Assembly (NCBI RefSeq): GCF_000002075.1
Contig: NW_004798094.1
Coordinates: forward strand, 23,430-83,345
Source of the DNA: Aplysia californica
Taxonomy: Eukaryota
Direction of reading: 5' to 3'
DNA length: 59,916 bases
Shown here: piece after piece, positions 1,195 to 39,830 of the stretch
Layout of the letters: every line of letters starts with the position of its first letter
How positions within the stretch are numbered: the stretch's first letter is position 1
The notes under the pieces: model-generated
The model's input: the letters and a program-made list of their open reading frames with translations, nothing else
Databases searched by the model: none
Told to the model about the DNA's origin: nothing
Made by a program: the position numbers and the translations under genes

Positions 1195-2539
1195 TTCCTT
1201 CTCTCTCTCTTTCCTATCTATCTATCTACATGTATCTATCTATCTACATCTATCTATCTATCTATCTTTCTCTCTGTTTCTCTATTTCTCTCGTCAGTAC
1301 AGAGGATTGGGGGGGGATTGTCACTACTCTCGGAAATAAATCTAGAACCTTTACTTTTCTCACCGGAATCTGAGGTGAATGTAGAGCTTAGGCTTTCTGC
1401 CGTCGTATGCAGAAGGCCCGCCTCCAAAATGATCTAAGTAATTGTGTTGATGGGCACACTGTAAAGCGTGGGTGTGCGCTATATGAATGCTATACAGTGA
1501 AACCTGTGTAAAGCGACAACTCATTGTCAAGGAGAAAAGTGGCCATATGCACACAGGTGGCCGTCTCAGGCAGGACTGATCAAAATGAAGGAAGCAATTA
1601 ATCACTCTCTTCTGAGGCTCAAAGCAGGGTAAATCTCAGGCTGTAGACTGCCGTAAAGCTAATTCAAGAGTTTTTGTTTTCTTTGGGGGGGGGGGAAAAG
1701 GCTGTGGGTGGTGTTAGAAGGGTTTGTTGATTTGTTTTGGGTTTGGTTTTTTTATTTTGATAAGCTTGACATTTTCTTTTTGTCTCTGACTTTGTGCAAG
1801 GGTAAAATGAACGAAATATTATGTAAGTAAGACGATGAAAACCGAGTGCCAAGGTAAAACAAACACACAGGTCGTCACCACTCGGAGAACGAGCGATGCT
1901 TCTGTCGCAAGTTCACGTTAACGCCCATTGTTATTTTGTTACAGATAAGGTAAACAAAACAGTGACCAGTTACCTCTGATACCACTAAGTTCATGAGTTG
2001 AGGGCGGGGCTTATAGGTTTTGACTAACGCCAGCTTTAAAAGTAGGAGTTGGTTATGACGGATCACATGCTTCCCTCAAAAGCAGTTGAACATTTATCGT
2101 TAGACGTACCCATTAGTCAACTTGCGTAAACATTCATTGGCGGGACTAACAGTAACGACAGGTGAATGAATTATCATGACAGCCCGTCCACAGCGTGAGG
2201 GGCCGATTCAAAATTTATGACAAATCGTCGGGCGATGAGTGACCACGCCTGGCCGCCTGGGAGAGGTAAATTTGACCGTGGGTTGATAAAATAAGGTGGC
2301 TGCGGCCGCGTTGCGCAGGTGACCATTTTACAGTTAAATTATAATATTTAGAAAAACGCAAGGATGAAATGGAAAGTGGCCGTTAGTATAGGACCAGGTG
2401 GCCGTATTAGACAGGAGGCCGTCATTGCAGGTTCGACGATATTATTATTACTATTATTATTATTATATTTATTAACACTATCATCCTTATTACCAACATT
2501 ATCATTCTTTCTTTATTCATTATTATTATTATTATTATA

Positions 2540-2572
<33 letters not shown>

Positions 2573-2618
2573 ATAATTATTATTAGGCTATAATTATCAT
2601 CATCATCTCATCCAAAAG

Positions 2619-2884
2619 ATGACGAGACTTCCTCACGTGACACTCGCAAAGACGAGGAAGACGACGACGAGGACAGCGACGACGAGGAAGGGAGATGCCA
2701 ACGTTGGGTGAACGCCGCATGCGGAATGCCCAAAGCCCAGGCCAAGAATAAACAGACGGCGGCCATTACGCTCAACGAACGCAGAAGTTTCCTCATCGAG
2801 AACCCGAGATGGGAGGCCATCTTGAATATCAACGCTGCCTTGGGGCTCTCAGTGATGGCGTTTTTAATTGGATACTATCGTTAG
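2619..2884 (+). CDS. SLC5A family gene, terminal coding exon (...EGRCQRWVNAACG...FLIENPRWEAILNINAALGLSVMAFLIGYYR*)
   Basis: In phase (1) with the previous exon. Acidic loop, then ExPxWxxxxNINAxxxxxVxxFxxGY as in the SGLT C-terminal TM helix; TAG at 2882-2884. The acceptor (AAAG) is weak. Confidence 0.8.
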
Positions 2885-3429
2885 AAGTATCATAGATGTA
2901 AAATTACATAGATTTAGTATAATACATGTAATTAGAGACTATGAATGCCCTGGGAAATGTTCACCCATAGTAAGATTGCGAAGAATGGCGTCACTTGGTG
3001 GTGAATAGAGAAAGAGGAGGGGGTGAAAATGGCATCATTTGCATACTGGCAGCCACAAGAAGAGTGAGAACTTTTCCAAGTGTGCTCGGGCCTTACACGT
3101 TGTCAGATAGTGTACATAGTATTGACTTAAATGAGTACATTATGATTATTATTAATATCAGTATCATATTAACGCCATGTCGTGCAATTTATGTAGATAG
3201 CTTTGGTTACGTTTTACTTTACCGTACTAGCTGTCATTATTTGTCCAAGTGTATGTTCATAATAATATATATTGTAGACAATGACCACAATTTTCTTGGA
3301 CAAATGAACGAGCTTTTTGATAGTACCACTAAGTCACACTGAATATGCCCGAAAACTGACGAAATGTTTCATCATAGCACATTTTTTGAAGGGGGGGGGG
3401 TATCTGCATTTTCAAAAGACAATTGAGAC

Positions 3430-3955
3430 AACAGAGTTTTGTTCATAAGACGCATGCTGTGTATCCCATGGACAGCTAGAAAAACAATAAATGAAGAAGA
3501 CTTTGTCTTGGTTGAAGCAAATTGCAGAAGATAGTTTATGACGAATATAGGCCTACAAAAGCAACAGGCAAAGTTGATTGGACACACAATGAGGAAAGAA
3601 GTATTGGAGAATATTGTAACAACAGCCAAGTTTGATGGAAAGTGAGTAAGAGGCAGACAAGAGGGAAAAGATAGTTTTAGTAAGAATTTGATTTCACTTG
3701 CAACACAATAAGGTCATATAAGTGCCGAAGATTAGAGGTGTTACAAGAGAGTAACAAACCCGAAAAAGGAGGGAAGATAAAGACTATAGATGTTTGACAG
3801 GAAAAAAGAAGCAAACCACACCAAAGCACCCGCGCAACCACCTACAGAGGGAAAAGATGCTGAACAAGTTGACAACATATCTGGAAACAGCAAGAAAGAC
3901 AGACTCCATCGATCGCTGCAACGTAAGACAGAGTGAAGTGGAGGTCCATGATGAT
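3430..3955 (+). mobile_element. RTE-clade LINE 3' fragment
   Basis: RRML.IPWTARKTIN..., GHTMRKE.LENIVTT; homologous to 53790-54345. Confidence 0.7.
3673..3845 (-). mobile_element. 5'-truncated non-LTR 3' end (I-clade-like tail) inserted in an RTE fragment
   Basis: 13-bp TSD AGAGGGAAAAGAT (3660-3672 / 3846-3858); similar copies at 10363-10544, 17500-17760, 37780-37900, 38675-38860. Confidence 0.75.
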
Positions 3956-6745
3956 TTTCAAAAGTATTTATTTAGCATCCATTGACACAACACAATTATT
4001 ATTTATCCAGTTTATGAGGTGGGCCCCTTCAAACATTCACTTAGTTCTGAGTAAGATGCTGCAGTCCAAAAGACAGGAAGAGATTTTAGAAGCATTAACT
4101 TTTATTCCATTAAAGAAAAAAAACTGTTACTCCATTACAACGCCGCTGGTCTTCCTACTCATCATTGCTATCTGTCAATAAGTCACACTATAAATTATTG
4201 CCAACCTGTCAGCTTTTTGCTTCATCGTCAAAAGACGTGGTGAATATTATTATTACTTTTCTCATCCTGATACCAACAAAATCATAATCTAATTAAAGTT
4301 TGTTCTGTTCGTGTTGTAGCTGCTTTTGGCTGTTGGTTTGTTGTTTGTTTGTTGTTGGTTTTTTTGCGGCCCGGGGGGGGGGCTTCTGTTTGGTTTTGTT
4401 TTGCAGGGTTTTTTTTAGTCTTCATCTAAAATAACGGAATCTGGGTTGTTGTACTTCTTTTTTAAGCCTCATCCTTTCTATCTCAAAGGAAGAGGATGTG
4501 TGTCTGAGATCAGAGTACTGTACGCAAAAGAAACGGAGGCTATTGCGCCCTGTGTGCATTGCAGAAAGTTTCATTAAATCTCCATAGGACTGATATTGAG
4601 GGGTTTTTTGCATTTGATTCCTGCAAGGTTTTCTTTAAATGGGAGGGCAAACGATGCCATTTTACCACTGTTTGATCAAATCTTACAAAATCAATAAATG
4701 TGTGCATTTGATTTTCTAGTTCTGGTGGATATAANNNNNNNNNNNNNNNNNNNNNNNNNNNNNNNNNNNNNNNNNNNNNNNNNNNNNNNNNNNNNNNNNN
4801 NNNNNNNNNNNNNNNNNNNNNNNNNNNNNNNNNNNNNNNNNNNNNNNNNNNNNNNNNNNNNNTTTAGAAGTAGCTAATATCCAACACCAAATGAGGACAT
4901 TGAATTATCACGTAAACGACACAACTTTCTGAGGATTATAACATCTGTGATTTTATTCTTGTTTGCGTCAATAATAAGTCCCAACATGCGTATCAGATCA
5001 GTGCTCAGATGGTATTACTATTACTTGCATGTTCACAATGATAGACCGGTATAGAATCATAATAGATTGAATTGACATAGCGCACATACACACTCAAACA
5101 GAGGAGAAATCCTTTAGAACTATCAAATATATAATGTTATAGTCATTACACTTCGCACAAAATGGTAAGACGATAATTTAATCTAGGATTATAATAATGG
5201 ATTTGAAAGGGAGAAGTTTAGTGTAACAATCTGCCTGAAACCCTAAGTGTGGAATAAGAGCATTACAGTAGACAGACAAACTAACCTGGCATGGCATGGT
5301 GGAATCAGGCGCTCATCAATTTTTCATATCATCTTTAAAGTCAGTTCATTTGCCTTGCTATTGGTGAAAAAAATATCGATCTATGTTGAATGGAAGTCGA
5401 GATATTTTCGATTGAAGGAGGTTAGGGTCGCCTGCTTTCAGACGTAAAATTTGCGAGAAAATGGCCGCCAAAGTGTGTTAATTTCGATAGCTTCAAACTC
5501 CTTGGAAACTGAAAGTTTGCACATTTTGTGCTTTTAATCAATGATTTTCAGTAAAAATCAACGCGGGAATGTGTTTTTAAATAGATATAAAGGGTGTTGA
5601 GCTAAAAAAAAGAAAATTAAAAAAAAATGGCCTGAAGGCCAGAAACATGCCAGTTTCTTTGATTTAATGATTTCTAAGAGCGCCTGATTTCACCACGATG
5701 CATGACAATTGATGACCGGGGACCAACACAATACGATGATGATTGTCAAAGCAAACAAACACATGTCGCCATTATAGTTTCTCAGCAGCAAAACAAAAAC
5801 AATGAGAATCGCATGATATAATTATTACTCTTGTGAAACGTGTTCCTAGGTCGAGGAATTATCATCTCATGATACTGAGTGACATAATTATTATTCAGTT
5901 GTGTGACATTGAAATTGTAGTGAAATCAGGCTCTAGTCAAAACAATGAAATCGAAAGAAAAAAAACACAACTGTGTCCCCCGTTGAGCAATTTTTATCGA
6001 TACTTTTCATTCTTTTTTTTCTTAAAAAGAAAAACGCGCACTTCTGGGTGGATATTTACTTTTTTTTTTAAACAACGTTGATTAAAAGTACAGAAATTAA
6101 TATAAATTTATAGCAATATTGAAAGACACCCAAACTTTGGAAATCATCAAATTCTGGCCGGCATTTTCTCGCTAGTTTTACCTCTGTCGCAAAGCAATCC
6201 CTACTTCCTTCAATCGTGCATATTCATGTCGCGACTTCAGTGCTTTCTTGTCGTGTCTACGTTTTTTAAACATTGAAAATGTGACTTCTTCTTAAGCTCA
6301 CTCTTTGTTATGAACTGTTCTCAGTTATTAAAAATGGAGATACGACAAAAAAAAGTACTGAGGTCGCCATATCTATACATGATCTAATAAGTCGACTTCT
6401 ATTCAAGATGGATGGGTTTTATCCATCATGAGCAAAACAAATTGACAATCTTTCATCTTATTTAATAACCCCAACTCCAAATCCCCAAAATTGACGAGTG
6501 CCTGATTCCACAGTTTCATCGAAACAACATTCTATAGGCTTCAGACAAGCCTAGTGTATTTACGACACCAGACCCCGCTCACCCAAGGAAATCTGAAGAA
6601 AAAACAAAACAAAAAAACAAACCGCAGTTCGTTTTGCAATGGCTACTATAGAAATGGGAACTGTCCTGTATTAAGTTACTCCAGTTTCCAATTTTTGAGA
6701 GTTTTGTAACAACTTTCAGGCTGTTGAAAAATAAATATGTCACGA

Positions 6746-30429: not shown

Positions 30430-30810
30430 GTAAGTCTTTTTATGCTGATGTTCTGATCTATCCAACCAAAATCTACCTTAAACCATTCACTGCTGACCTA
30501 TATTCCCTGCCCTATGCTGACCTTATTTCCAGGAATAGCACTCAAACGGTGATCCTTTTAAAGTGCTATTTACTCTGTGGTAGTGCATCAAATGCATGAC
30601 AAAGTCTATATCATTGTAAAGAGAAATGAATGAACGGCTATCATCTTCAGCAAAAATTTCTTCGATAGCTTGATACGTTGAGAGCTTTCATCGCGAGTAA
30701 TCAGCCATAGCTCGGAGCTAGAGTGAGACGCTAGAACTGTGAAGAGAGAGTGACTGTTCAGTGACGCTATAATTCAAGCTATTTCGGTCATAGTTGGTCT
30801 AACTAGGGAA

Positions 30811-32834
30811 CACGGCTGTTCCACTCAGGATCGCTTAGTTGCCGGCCGACCTGACCTCCGAGACGAGGTCACGCCCCGGTCACGCTACCTGCGGGCGCTC
30901 GGCCTCGCGGTCAGCGGCTCCCCCGCAATGTTATGTTTTGTACACATAAAACAACACCAGTTCTTATGAAAGCCGAGAAAGTCAATGAAACAACAACCAG
31001 ATGATCACATGAAGACGAAGGTGTAGTTTACGACAGTATAATTTTTATCACGGAGAAGTAAAAGAAAGTGTTGTTTAAAAGAGGGGGAATGTGGCGTTCG
31101 CAATAGATTGGTTATTACAAACAAACATGTTTTTAAAAAAAATAATTAAAAATAAACGGACCGACAGATTGTTACAGTCTTAATTTTCAGCTCACAGTCA
31201 GACTTTGAACTTTCAAACACACTTACGTTTATGAGGTAGGACCAAAATGTCTTGTTGCTATTGTTGATTAATGCACACAGTCTTGTCAATGAGTGGGAAA
31301 ACACTTTTACTTCTACCAGCAACCGACTGCCTAACTTTGTTAATTATATTTGTTCTTCGTTTTCTTGTCGGTGAGCTTGCTAAGTCAGATGATATTCTGT
31401 GTGTGACTGTCCTTTGAAACACTAATGGCTGTCCTTTTGTTTTGAACCTCAACTGTCCTTTTCGTCTGAGATGTGTTAAGCTTTCATCTGATCAGATGTG
31501 TAGATCTAGCAACTTTTACTTCTAACGGCGTGAGTAGCTCTGTGTCCGATTTCAAAAGTGTTGACTCTAATGTCGTTTCATGTTTGACTAATGGGGAGCT
31601 GGTACTGTCTGTGAACTGTTTCGTCTTCGTTTTAGGTGTGGATGTCAAAATATGAGTTTCTGGTGAAATGTAAAATGAGTCTTCGTCTGTATGTGTAAAT
31701 GTGCTGTCAATGGATTGAGTGGTAAAGGGCTGAGCACCATCGCCTATACTTACAGAGGAAACATCTGGGGTGGGGGTTTCCGTTATGCTCGCAGACTCCA
31801 CTCCCATAAGAGCGGGGGACGGACAAGGCAACTCGTGTCCTTCCGTAAGCAAAGGAATGCGTTCTTTAATGCACCCTTTGCTAAGTTTAACACAGCGAGC
31901 ACACACAGAGCACTGGTTAATGTTTATGCTTGCGTCGTAAGCAGACCAAACATAGGCACTGTCTTCTACACATTTCTGTGCGGACTTCAAAGCCGCATTT
32001 GTAATTTGCTTCAGTGGTGCGTATATTCGCGAGCCACATTTCCTGCACTGAGTGTTGGAATGCTTGTCGCTGTGTCGTTGTCAATGTTCAGTCTATAATA
32101 TTGCAATAAGTCAGACTTAAAGTGTTTCCACAAAAATCGACGCTGCTTAGAAACTTTATTTTTTAAACTTCTTCCACCAGAAGTACGACACTACTTGTTT
32201 AAATTCTCAAAGTGGATGTTATAAGAGTGTTTCATCTTTGATGTTAAAAGGCTCTATAATTATAAACACACAAGAAAGTCTGACGGCAAGTTCTCGCTTC
32301 ACAGCGTTTTTCTTTGCACCGAACATTGCACTAGACTAGTCACATAAAGTGCGCTAGTTCATGGAAATTTAGCTCCTACCCTGAGATTTTTCACCACAAT
32401 GGAGAGAATAGATTTATGAAAAGAAATATGAAGGTTAAAACAAAAATTGTCGGTTCGAATTATTAAAATTCTCTTTTAAATCCAAGAACTTCAATAACAC
32501 AGAGCTGTACAATAGTGGTAGTATATAGGTATCCCAACGGAGTATAAAACGAGATAGAAACTGGTTTCAAACTACGGGTTATAGAGGAGATGCTGAGCTT
32601 TTATTTGGTATACAACACTCCTAGGTTTACGGGATGGAGAAAGGGAGTACTATGCTGTAAATTCCAGTTAATTTCTGGAAATTGTACCCTTTCCGCGAGG
32701 AGCGGTCAGATCTAGGGATAGGCCGGTGAAAGTGGCGTAACGCGTCGAGATTTATTACCTTCCGCCAGGGGTCAGAAGGGTCAGACGGGCTACAACTAAG
32801 TGCGCCGCTCGGAGAGTGAAACTGAACAGCCGTG
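30811..32834 (-). mobile_element. Internally deleted Chapaev/N-RAG-TP-like DNA transposon in PSMD5 intron 3
   Basis: Perfect 11-bp TIR CACGGCTGTTC...GAACAGCCGTG, extending imperfectly (CACTC, CTTAGTTG). Flanks GGGAA/GGCAA form a TSD with 1 mismatch. Internal decayed transposase N-terminus. Confidence 0.75.
31258..32235 (-). pseudogene. Decayed transposase N-terminal part with RAG1-N-terminal-like Cys/His motif
   Basis: Reconstruction across stops and frameshifts: MKHSYNIHFENLNK*CRTSGG...DLLQYYRLNIDND/DKHSNTQCRKC...VWSAYDASININQCSVC...LTPLEVKVARSTHLIR*/LRFKTKGQPLVFQR. Confidence 0.7.
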
Positions 32835-33227
32835 GGCAAACTAAAGCTTCTCTAACTCAAGAAGAAAAGAGCTTTCTGGGGAGCCCACTCTTGATACTAA
32901 ATTGCAATTACCAGCTGAGTAGGAAACAAAACAAAATAGCGATATTGCCGGGCGTACACTGTACGTCTACAGTTCATATGAGGGCCCGATTTATGGACGT
33001 ACTCCGCAGGCTGAGTAGCAGTGAAGCGGTTAAAATCAGTTTTGTGTATAATGTCAAGTTTTTTTTTCTATTGTCTCTGTTTTTGAATGAGTGAAGGGAA
33101 CTTCAAGAAGATCTTTCTCTGGGCTTTTTTTTCTTTTGGCTGTTAGGGGGGGGGGGGAGATTATACGTTTTACACTTTTTTCTTTGCATGTTGTCTGTGG
33201 GTTTTTTTTCAGGTTTCTGCATACTTG

Positions 33228-35642: not shown

Positions 35643-35690
35643 TTAAGCGGATTCCACTATTATTATAACATTTCACCACGCTGCCCTCAG

Positions 35691-35943
35691 ATTGCCACAG
35701 ACCTCAGCATGCTGGCGCCGGCGGCTCTCGACGCCTGCGTCTCCTCGGGCGTGCTGCAGCAGCTGATCAACGAGATGCAGAAAGACGACATCCTGGTACA
35801 GCTCAACGCCATCGAGCTCCTCTCCGACCTGGCGCAGTCCCCGCACGGCCTCGTCTTCCTGGACCAGCACGGCATCGTGGGAAAGCTGGAAGAGATGATG
35901 GTCGGCGTCAGTGACAATCCAATGTCTGGTCTTCTCTTACCAG
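35691..35943 (+). CDS. PSMD5: PSMD5 exon 5 (IATDLS...SGVLQQLINEMQKDDILVQLNAIELLSDLA...GLLLP)
   Basis: CAG/GT; GC-rich codon usage; conserved DDxLV motif. Confidence 0.9.
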
Positions 35944-37118
35944 GTTGGGAATTCTTTAAGAAGACAATAATGACAATGACAATCTTTATTCATCTCGCAG
36001 GGACCGTGTCCCTAATGATAATAATGATGATAATAATAATAGGAGTAATAGTAATAGATAAATGTGAGGCTGCATGGTGAAATCTGGCACTAGTCAAAAT
36101 AATGAAATCGAAGAAATCAGTATTTTTCAGCCAGTTTGGAATTTTTTTTTGAATTTGTGTTTTTTGACTCAATACCTTGTAAGTCCATTCAAAATCATTC
36201 TAATGTGTAGATTTCATGGAAAAACATTGATTAAAGGCACGAAAATGTTAATTTTCAGTTTCCAAGGATTCTTGAGCTATGGAAGTCACCAAACTTTGGC
36301 GATCCCTTTCTCACTAATTTTACTTCTGAAACCAGGTGACCTCACCTCCTTCAATCGCAAATATCTCGTCTTTTATTCAAGATAAATGGATTTTTTTTTC
36401 ATAAGATGCAAGGCAAATTACCAACCTCTAAGATAATACCTATAACTTCGTATACCCAAAAATTGACGAGCGCCTGATTCCGCCACGTCGTGACATAAAT
36501 AGCATTTGTATTGCACAAATTCTCGCTGAACAGCAAGCAATACAATTCCGTTCAAAAAACCTTCATCCAAGGGAAGTATATCAAAGGTGTTGAGAGAACA
36601 GAAACTGATTGGATCAGTCCTAGAATAGGGAATCTTGAAACATTCGTGATAATCTCTCAGAGAGGAGCTAATGCCTGCCCTCGGATATAACTCGTGTTAC
36701 AGGAAGAGTAAAAATGGTTACAGAAAAAGGGAAAGACTGAAAATGACTTATTGTTTACTGAATTTATTTCATGCAACATAGAACAGAGCTCATGATGTGT
36801 GTTTCCTAAGACTAGCCGGAGTAGATGTAATAGTTCAGTCATTATTGCTAGTTCTGAATCTTTGTCTTTTTAAGAAATGTAATGAAGAAATGATGGGTAA
36901 AGTTACTCTAAAGTGTTATCGTACACGAGAATTAACTATTCCACTAGAACTATAAAAAAAAAGAATTAATTTTAAAGAAAAATTTTTTAAACTATTCCAA
37001 TGGGGCTGTTCACGGACACATACATGTGTTGAGTTATTTCAGAGCCTGGATCTGTAGTTGAATTAGTTTTGGGGGGAGCTTGGATTAGAAAAAGACTAAA
37101 GACTCTATTATAGCTTAA

Positions 37119-37382: not shown

Positions 37383-37494
37383 TTAATGTGTACCCTTGAT
37401 TCTTTGAATCGGAACAGTTTGTTATTTTACTGTATTTTGTATCCTTTTGAATTTGTTTGTCATTCTCAAATTTTTTGCTTTTCCTTTCGACCAG

Positions 37495-37683
37495 GTCTCA
37501 TAAAATTTTTTGGAGGTCTCGCCAGACATCATCCAAAAGAGGTTCTCTCCAAATTTGACAATTTCGTTCGCTTGGTCCTGATGAACGTGTGTGGAGGGGA
37601 CGCCAGTCTTCAGGGGGTCTCCGTGGACACTTTGGCTTTTATCTCTTCCACGCCGGAGGGGAAACTGGCCCTGGAAAAACTTG
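37495..37683 (+). CDS. PSMD5: PSMD5 exon 6 (GLIKFFGGLA...VSVDTLAFISSTPEGKLALEKL)
   Basis: CCAG/GT; PGxxKFFG and VDT..EGK motifs. Confidence 0.9.
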
Positions 37684-38647: not shown

Positions 38648-39434
38648 GTTAGTGATGAGTAGCCATGCTTCGAGCACTCGGGTGTTTGGCGGGGCGCTCT
38701 CTGGTGTGGGGTGCTTCTTCTTTCCTATTAAACATCTATCGTCCTTATCTCCCCTTCTTCTTTTTTATGGTTGTTACTCTCTTGTAACATCTCTAATCTT
38801 CTGGCACTCATATGACCTTGTGCAGTTGCGAGCACCGTGAAACCCTCTACTAAAACTAAAAGACGTTTGTGTCGGTGAATGCGCAGCGGGGTTGTCATCA
38901 GGTTGTGAAATGTTTGCTGCTCTGTTTGCTTTCAGAAATACTGGCGTCTGGTTAGATGAGATAAGATAAGACTAGAGGCATCTTTATTGTTTAGATCCTG
39001 GCATATTGGTTTGGTGTTTCACCTTGTACACACACCCATACGTACTTGAACACACCCACTCGCACTCACATGAACACATAAACATATACACACACGCACA
39101 CACACACACAAACTTGTACACACACAGGATCATTGTAATTGGTGAGTAGTATACAAAGTACAAGAAATGATGAAGTGACTTTGAATGTATTTTGATTTCT
39201 TTCTGTGTGGGGTTTTTTTTTTTTAAAGGACGTTGAGACCATAATTGGTATAGTGGAGACTAGACTTCTGAATAAAAAACAAGACATTCTCTACCTCTCA
39301 GTACAGGTTGGCACTGACACGTAGGCTTGAAGCAGCCTGATCTAAATTGTGTTGTGGTTGAGGGAGGGGGTGTAATATCATGTACAGTTGCAATATCTTT
39401 TGTTATCGTTTATCATCGAATCTTTTGTGCGCAG

Positions 39435-39830
39435 GTCGAGCATCAGACGGTGGAACTGCTGACCTTGACAGAGCGTTGGTTCGGCACCTCCATGTCGCTT
39501 CCGTTTGACTCGGTGTGGTCGATAGCCCAGCAGCCGTTCTCCGACCTCCGGATCCCCGCCCTCCACCTCCTGCAAAGCGTGGCGCTGTGCCCGTGGGGGC
39601 AGAAGCTCATGAACAATTGCCCCGGCTTCCGGGAGTACGTCCTGGACAGAGCCACGGAGAACACCAAGGAGGGAAAAGATGAGAAGTTTGAGCTGGTTCG
39701 GATCCTGGCCCATTCTCCGACGGCCGTTGAGATTTTGGGGCGGCCGTATCATGTGAAGTTGATGGAGTATTTCAACCAAGGCCCATTTTTTGTCTTGGCG
39801 CAGTCGGAGGTGGCTTTGGAGGGAGAATGA
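39435..39830 (+). CDS. PSMD5: PSMD5 terminal exon 8 (VEHQTVELL...QPFSDL...PGFREYVLDR...QGPFFVLAQSEVALEGE*)
   Basis: GCAG acceptor, TGA stop; QPF, PW, PGF.EY..DR and GP motifs. Spliced total 502 aa, close to human S5b length. Confidence 0.92.
   Translation, partial: VEHQTVELLTLTERWFGTSMSLPFDSVWSIAQQPFSDLRIPALHLLQSVALCPWGQKLMNNCPGFREYVLDRATENTKEGKDEKFELVRILAHSPTAVEILGRPYHVKLMEYFNQGPFFVLAQSEVALEGE

Follow-up and report, generated by a model that had tools for sequence, protein, structure and literature searches.

The window analysed here is a stretch of 59,916 nucleotides from Aplysia californica (contig NW_004798094.1 of assembly GCF_000002075.1, positions 23,430 to 83,345 of the forward strand), and the element with which this report is concerned occupies positions 30811-32834 of it. 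With a probability of roughly 93%, we read this element, which lies antisense in an intron of PSMD5, as a fossil and non-autonomous copy of a cut-and-paste DNA transposon that belongs to the Chapaev group (CMC/Transib-related) and is of the N-RAG-TP kind. The assignment to Chapaev is made because the ends begin with CAC, the target-site duplication (TSD) is 4 bp long (2-4 bp in CMC elements, 5 bp in Transib), the encoded protein begins with a Chapa finger, and the core of the transposase has the motif pattern expected of the group. Elements of this kind are known already and the copy itself is ordinary, a matter of routine repeat annotation; its ends, which are unequal in the manner of the 12- and 23-spaced signals of RAG1, the recombinase of antibody genes, are the sole feature with some novelty. 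More broadly, the sea-slug genome holds a recently active Chapaev family that combines a RAG1 N-terminal finger with a core of predicted RAG1 fold and has no RAG2.

The 11-mer CACGGCTGTTC (30811-30821) and the sequence at 32824-32834 are perfect reverse complements of each other, which gives the element an 11-bp terminal inverted repeat (TIR) starting with CAC, as had been claimed in an earlier note made from the sequence of this DNA. The same 2.7 kb contains further perfect 11-nt inverted pairs (e.g., I14 and I15), and the repeat by itself therefore proves nothing; what establishes the TIR is that more than 20 genomic copies end at these same two boundaries, each with a flanking duplication. 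These copies were found when the genome of the window (927,310,431 bases in 4,332 contigs) was searched at the DNA level; at least 10 copies span all 2,024 bases at 93-97% identity to the window element and about 50 matches are partial or rearranged, including many other deletion forms. The edges of more than 20 copies coincide exactly with CAC and GTG, and in 22 of them the CAC-starting 11-mer, a Chapaev feature, is present at both ends. A 4-bp direct duplication of varied sequence and without consensus (TCAC, CCTG, ACAC, TATA and TACA are examples) flanks about 20 copies, and the TSD of the window copy is therefore read as GGAA/GGCA, with one mismatch. The earlier note had offered two readings of a near-duplication, of which this 4-bp option survives; the 5-bp option, GGGAA/GGCAA, was rejected, every informative copy having a TSD of 4 bp.

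How the window copy was formed is revealed by a longer copy of 4,029 bp, located on a different contig (L032:979-5007). The window element aligns with positions 1-492 and 2493-4029 of this longer copy and thus equals it minus positions 493-2492 (2,000 bp), with 2 bp of microhomology at the junction. Both ends have been kept, as have the N-terminal finger and the linker, while codons from about 317 onward and the whole second piece of the open reading frame (ORF), and with them the entire DDE catalytic core, are gone; the internally deleted, non-autonomous character suggested in the earlier note is thereby borne out. The minus-strand reading from the ATG at 32235 is as that note described it, and comparison with L032 discloses each of the three lesions predicted there, namely a stop in place of a Leu codon (codon 22, TAG at 32192), a Cys to Ser change (codon 26, at 32180) and a frameshift (a 1-bp deletion at codon 63, position 32068). 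A 6-bp insertion at codon 251 and a 1-bp insertion at codon 265 bring the interruptions of the remnant to one stop, two frameshifts and one 6-bp insertion. In L032 the transposase is encoded by ORFs of 622 and 291 aa (minus strand in the sense of the window) with one frameshift between them; joined, they match full-length relatives of 896-1,009 aa and give a transposase of about 913 aa. The 2 kb that code for the core have been kept in just two to four copies, i.e., the near-identical copies on C93 and C49 plus two older, partial ones. C93 and C49 differ by a Kimura two-parameter distance of 0.013 over the terminal 1.5 kb and are 98.8% identical across 3.2 kb aligned; C49 is open across the site of the C93 frameshift, yet it is interrupted elsewhere and includes an assembly gap. 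Longer copies with the same TIRs, which the earlier note had proposed to look for, thus exist, and none of this family is intact in the assembly.

Among nine 2-kb copies that were compared pairwise, differences range from 0.07 to 5.8% (mean 4.3%), and the copies closest to the one in the window diverge from it by 2%. Two of the copies, G000:C278:304586-306609 (L002, TSD TCAC) and G000:C153:1240155-1242178 (L003, TSD CCTG), are about 0.1% different and have different flanks. Such low divergence at different sites and with different TSDs implies that the deleted form was mobilised very recently, so that the earlier description of a family once mobile in this genome holds for a multicopy family with TSDs, with the correction that its mobility was recent and not solely ancient.

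The gene remnant in the window copy begins with a zinc finger that is related to the N-terminus of RAG1. Two independent profiles were used, A1 consisting of the L032 protein and 13 homologues (14 sequences) and A2 of 21 N-terminal paralogues of this genome. For both, the best match in PDB is 21wb_A, the N-terminal zinc domain (NZD) of mouse RAG1 (E 9.3e-6 and 4.2e-6, respectively), and full-length RAG1 comes next (E 0.04 for A1, 0.004 for A2). The profile alignments pair the H...LCRxCG, D...HxxxCxxC and W...CxxC columns given in the earlier note, with the His and Cys ligand columns conserved. A relative from an ENA metagenome assembly, P0025 (934 aa), matches the Pfam family RAG1_imp_bd (PF12560) with an E value of 1.2e-8; no match to this family was obtained with the L032 protein itself, and P0025 is the only relative that matches it. 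The profiles, the P0025 match and the conserved ligands identify the domain as a Chapa finger, the RAG1-N-terminus-related zinc finger of Chapaev transposases. Family profiles were needed here, as a single-sequence phmmer search of PDB with the 622-aa piece yielded merely chance matches to ribosomal L37. The likeness to the RAG1 N-terminal zinc domain asserted in the earlier note therefore holds (A1 and A2 both lead to 21wb_A), and both observations on which that note had staked its claim, similarity of the peptide to the RAG1 N-terminus and further TIR-bounded copies with TSDs, have been made.

By eye, the alignment also displays a RING-like C3HC4 Cys/His motif right after the Chapa finger of P0025, which, as far as its sequence indicates, appears to have the RAG1-like arrangement of finger plus RING on a DUF1280 core. 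At least 150 loci of the Aplysia genome have a Chapa finger, several of them within open frames of 900-940 aa, and the group is therefore diverse and partly intact in this genome. Four diverged finger paralogues that are 32-43% identical to the finger of the present family (G000:C880:260992, C379:97324, C1039:201520 and C289:490681) lie in open frames of 809-941 aa and may represent intact transposase genes of other Chapaev families.

An AlphaFold2 (AF2) model of the N-terminal domain reached a pLDDT of 86. Foldseek and VIA-align searches with it, in structure libraries without 21WB, found no significant solved fold, the best of the weak matches being ZAD domains (Z 3-4). This agrees with the preprint on the NZD structure, which reports no solved homologue except for a local ZAD likeness of the first finger (10.64898/2026.01.24.700457). 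Weak matches to zf-AD were likewise obtained in Pfam, with E 0.028 and, among the relatives, in 5 of 14 (4.3e-5 at best). One could accordingly imagine a decayed fragment of a host ZAD-type zinc-finger gene that is flanked by an inverted repeat through chance, and perfect 11-nt inverted pairs do arise by chance in this region. Such a fragment is at odds with dozens of copies that have identical boundaries and 4-bp TSDs and with longer copies that run on into a DDE transposase; the copy and TSD analysis has already refuted this explanation, and we give it next to no credence.

The core that is missing from the window copy can be examined in the longer one. The L032 protein matches Pfam DUF1280 (E 1.9e-14, above the curated cut-off), and DUF1280 is found in all 26 relatives that were retrieved by database search. 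The L032 ORF pieces contain, in order, GGDHG, GDYDF, PCLWC, HMLERH and GEQG, and the same motifs occur in P0001, the closest intact relative, which is 51% identical and comes from another organism. Their order is that of the D, D, C(2)C, H(4)H, E pattern, a hallmark common to EnSpm, Mirage, Chapaev, Transib and RAG1 (PMC12730594), and the catalytic residues would be D463, D533 and E245 of the second ORF piece. A full-length AF2 model of P0001 (pLDDT 83) gave 49 significant Foldseek matches, all of them to RAG1, amphioxus BbRAGL or HzTransib (best E 4.5e-15), after which the list descends into noise. VIA-align places residues 345-914 of the model on 460-1008 of mouse RAG1 with Z 29.8 and a root-mean-square deviation of 4.1 over 463 residues. 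For several chains, the aligned part reaches back to residue 280 of the model on residue 392 of RAG1, that is, into the nonamer-binding domain (NBD), and HzTransib, which is without an NBD, aligns just from residue 344. A RAG1-like core, one of the things to be sought in a longer copy according to the earlier note, is hence represented by the DUF1280 region and by a relative whose predicted fold matches RAG1. Of the other things to be sought, the 4,029-bp element contains no RING finger and no RAG2-like gene; apart from the pieces of the transposase ORF, its only ORFs are ones overlapping those pieces on one strand or the other.

These findings also bear on whether the element is instead a remnant of a true RAGL or Transib transposon, from the direct lineage of RAG1-RAG2. 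Its CAC ends, the predicted core fold that the relative shares with RAG1, BbRAGL and HzTransib, the finger related to the RAG1 NZD and the unequal, 12/23-like ends described below would all suit such an origin. The TSD, however, is 4 bp in about 20 copies and in every informative one, not the 5 bp of Transib and RAGL; the 4-kb element has no second, RAG2-like ORF of the sort that adjoins RAGL; Pfam assigns the core to DUF1280, with no match to the Pfam RAG1 core in L032 or the relatives scanned, and its similarity to RAG1 is found at the level of predicted fold, the profile missing the RAG1 core by sequence. Moreover, NZD-like 'Chapa' domains have been reported from Chapaev transposases only, and Transib is described as being without one (10.64898/2026.01.24.700457; PMC4411706). 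We consider a RAGL or Transib origin very improbable and retain the Chapaev assignment.

Chapaev and Chapaev3 transposons were reportedly introduced by Kapitonov and Jurka in Repbase Reports in 2007 and 2008. Kapitonov and Koonin have since grouped Chapaev and Chapaev3 with Transib and have noted the Chapa domain, with RING in some subgroups (PMC4411706). The Aplysia family resembles them in its CAC...GTG ends, short TSD, Chapa finger, single transposase gene and many deletion derivatives; it differs in that the 4-bp TSD is without consensus and in lacking the RING present in some Chapaev subgroups. For CMC, TSDs of 2-4 bp are typical, a range that includes the length seen here (4 bp in about 20 copies; the P0001 element, L087, likewise has AGAT). 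As cited in PMC8355894 and PMC8374863, Panchin and Moroz described in 2008 a mobile element of the mollusc Aplysia californica, N-RAG-TP, whose protein is similar to the N-terminal region of RAG1; the present family is likened to it by description and not by sequence. With RAG1, RAGL and Transib (PDB 6oep, 6cg0, 6b40, 6pqx; NZD 21WB) the family has in common a two-zinc finger (by profile), a predicted core fold (Z of about 30), an NBD-like extension, the catalytic and zinc motifs, CAC ends and spacers that differ by 11 bp, whereas it departs from them in having no RAG2 partner, no RING, a TSD of 4 rather than 5 bp and no sequence-level similarity in the core.

Several points weigh against our assignment. 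The fold prediction concerns a relative in another organism, with 51% identity, and not the protein of this genome, and profile A1 reaches RAG1 through the N-terminal finger only and not through the core, so that the relationship of the core rests on predicted structure. No uninterrupted transposase gene of this exact family exists among the copies in the assembly, and the autonomy of the longer form is accordingly deduced from relatives. The duplications of Anolis Chapaev3 are 3-bp TWA (PMC3014272) as opposed to the 4 bp seen here, for which reason we assign the family to neither subgroup, Chapaev or Chapaev3. Finally, membership was judged by the described features of Chapaev and not by comparison with the Repbase Chapaev/Chapaev3 sequences.

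In the history that we consider most plausible, the autonomous form would have been about 4.0 kb long and would have encoded one transposase of about 913 aa, composed of the N-terminal finger, a disordered linker, an NBD-like helical element and the core, the last presumably a DDE domain of RAG1/Transib fold with C(2)C and H(4)H zinc motifs. Such a transposase would cut at the CAC...GTG ends and generate 4-bp target duplications. The form seen in the window arose when an internal deletion of 2,000 bp took out the core, and this form may then have been amplified in trans by full-length elements. The window copy later acquired its stop, its two frameshifts and substitutions at about 4-5% of positions.

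The features of the window copy are as follows, with the ends named by the orientation of the transposase gene.
30807-30810, no strand: left TSD, GGAA; one mismatch against the right GGCA, 4-bp TSDs being present in about 20 other copies.
30811-32834, minus strand: whole 2,024-bp non-autonomous element, with the transposase remnant on the minus strand; at least 10 full-length copies have the same boundaries.
30811-30821, plus strand: terminal 11-mer CACGGCTGTTC at the gene's 3' end; recurs at both ends in 22 copies.
30822-30833, plus strand: 12-bp spacer of the 3' end; from 22 copies and the genome-wide pattern search.
30834-30841, plus strand: CTTAGTTG, the conserved inner motif, its first base being nt 24 as counted from the tip; L087 of the other organism has it at this position too.
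30852-30913, no strand: subterminal TGACC/GGTCA motifs at 30852, 30867, 30878 and 30909; enriched at the ends relative to shuffles.
31302-31303, no strand: junction of the 2,000-bp internal deletion, microhomology CA; element positions 1-493 correspond to 1-492 of the long copy and 492-2024 to 2493-4029.
31258-32235, minus strand: transposase ORF remnant; codons 1 to about 316 up to the junction at 31303, then former 3' untranslated region (UTR) to the stop at 31258.
31861-32235, minus strand: what is left of the zinc finger of Chapa / RAG1-NZD-like type (codons 1 to about 125), with its lesions at 32192, 32180 and 32068.
32236-32792, minus strand: region upstream of the start codon, 5' UTR and presumed promoter; GGTCA at 32704, 32770 and 32779.
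32793-32800, minus strand: CTTAGTTG again, its first base here being nt 35 as counted from the tip; from 22 copies and the genome-wide search.
32801-32823, minus strand: 23-bp spacer of the 5' end; from 22 copies and the genome-wide search.
32824-32834, minus strand: 11-mer that terminates the 5' end of the gene, reading GAACAGCCGTG on the plus strand; recurs in 22 copies.
32835-32838, no strand: right TSD, GGCA; from comparison of copy flanks.

As this list indicates, the two ends are built of the same parts at different distances. In 22 copies both ends have the terminal 11-mer and the inner CTTAGTTG (the CTTAGTT motif), which begins at nt 24 on the downstream side of the gene (left in the window) and at nt 35 on the upstream side (right in the window), leaving spacers between the 11-mer and the inner motif of 12 bp at the 3' end and 23 bp at the 5' end. 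A genome-wide search for this end pattern, in which spacers of 5-35 bp were allowed and a control pattern was run alongside, gave 102 matches and none for the control. Among the 100 matches listed, the spacer is 12 bp in 51, 23 bp in 48 and 22 bp in one, and each of the 33 elements with both ends visible among them has one end of the 12 type and one of the 23 type. All 102 matches stem from two related families with the same terminal 11-mer, the present one and a C52-like family (identity of 48% in the finger and of about 69% in core DNA) whose spacer sequences are different. The P0001 element of the other organism (L087:3132-7312; 4,181 bp, TSD AGAT, with an intact 918-aa ORF) has CTTAGTTT starting at nt 24 at its 3' end and at nt 35 at its 5' end, although the sequences of its termini and spacers are not the same. 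The 11-bp offset and its polarity, with the long spacer at the gene's 5' end, have thus been kept in three families whose proteins are about 50% identical. At G000:C65:197123-197368, two ends of the 12 type stand back to back, 187 bp apart and pointing outward; possibly they belong to two elements that are adjacent or have been rearranged.

TIRs that are unequal in this way have been reported for RAGL-A, RAGL-B and Transib (PMC10462144). We found no description of strict 12/23-type spacing for Chapaev in the literature, Repbase Reports not being covered. The likeness to the RAG1 signals has its limits, since CTTAGTT is not an A-rich nonamer and the spacers are counted from the 11-mer (they would be 16 and 27 bp if a heptamer were assumed). 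The transposase would, we infer, read CTTAGTT via its NBD-like element and need one end of each kind. A still more far-reaching proposal, that Chapaev transposases in general pair 12- and 23-type ends via an NBD-like element and without RAG2, and that the unequal geometry and the finger predate the split between Chapaev and Transib/RAG, is put forward here as a speculation that we ourselves think doubtful. If it were true, the unequal-signal geometry of the V(D)J type would not be an innovation of RAG-like transposons; its occurrence in Chapaev, the sister group, would help to date the origin of the 12/23 rule, and the Chapaev family would provide a simpler, single-protein system in which to test that rule.

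The difference between the ends could also be a neutral historical indel that related families have inherited and that plays no role in end recognition, an explanation that we hold to be a serious contender at somewhat less than even odds. The 102 matches come from two related families with the same 11-mer and are hence not independent of one another, and the ends of the distant relatives P0004, P0006, P0007, P0010, P0011 and P0020 could not be defined from single copies, in which the candidate short inverted repeats are without TSDs; a role of the 12/23 type is argued from sequence and predicted structure. Against neutrality stand the retention of positions 24 and 35 and of the polarity in three families that are about 50% identical, one of them from another organism, even as the spacer sequences themselves differ between families, together with the alignment of the NBD-like element to the RAG1 NBD in the predicted model and the comparable TIRs of RAGL-A, RAGL-B and Transib cited above.

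The subterminal TGACC motifs that the earlier note had pointed out at both ends are likewise a property of the ends, TGACC/GGTCA occurring 6 times in the outer 2x120 bp and once in the 1,784-bp middle, a count that none of 20,000 composition-matched shuffles reached. In most copies the motifs of the 5' end form three direct repeats about 9 bp apart (window 32704-32783), and the motif is common to the window family and to the ends of the P0001 element in the other organism. TGACC/GGTCA may be a candidate for a second transposase-binding site.

The host gene of the insertion is PSMD5, as the earlier note had said. Plus-strand exons matching PF10508 lie at 24979-25161 (a weak match), 35688-35960, 37491-37673 and 39417-39824 of the window, and their presence on both sides makes the element intronic and antisense; exons for positions 64-181 of the PF10508 profile were not located, so that the number three given to the intron in that note is tentative.

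A few observations concern other individual copies. In the copy at L031:2164-8155 (G000:C526), the element is split by an insertion of about 6 kb, flanked by an 11-bp duplication of element positions 1128-1138, that contains ORFs of 403, 540 and 660 aa and looks, by eye, like a non-long-terminal-repeat (non-LTR) retrotransposon. In a diverged copy at L036:1207-1435 (G000:C460), a segment of about 58 bp (element positions 873-932) is present in about five tandem repeats. Between 63 and 77% of the words sampled from the 4,029-bp copy (L032:979-5007) occur in four small sequencing runs, X14, X18, X19 and X20 (47-53 million letters each, guessed to be RNA), a share that would be unexpected for DNA at such low depth and that hints at transcription of the 4-kb element.

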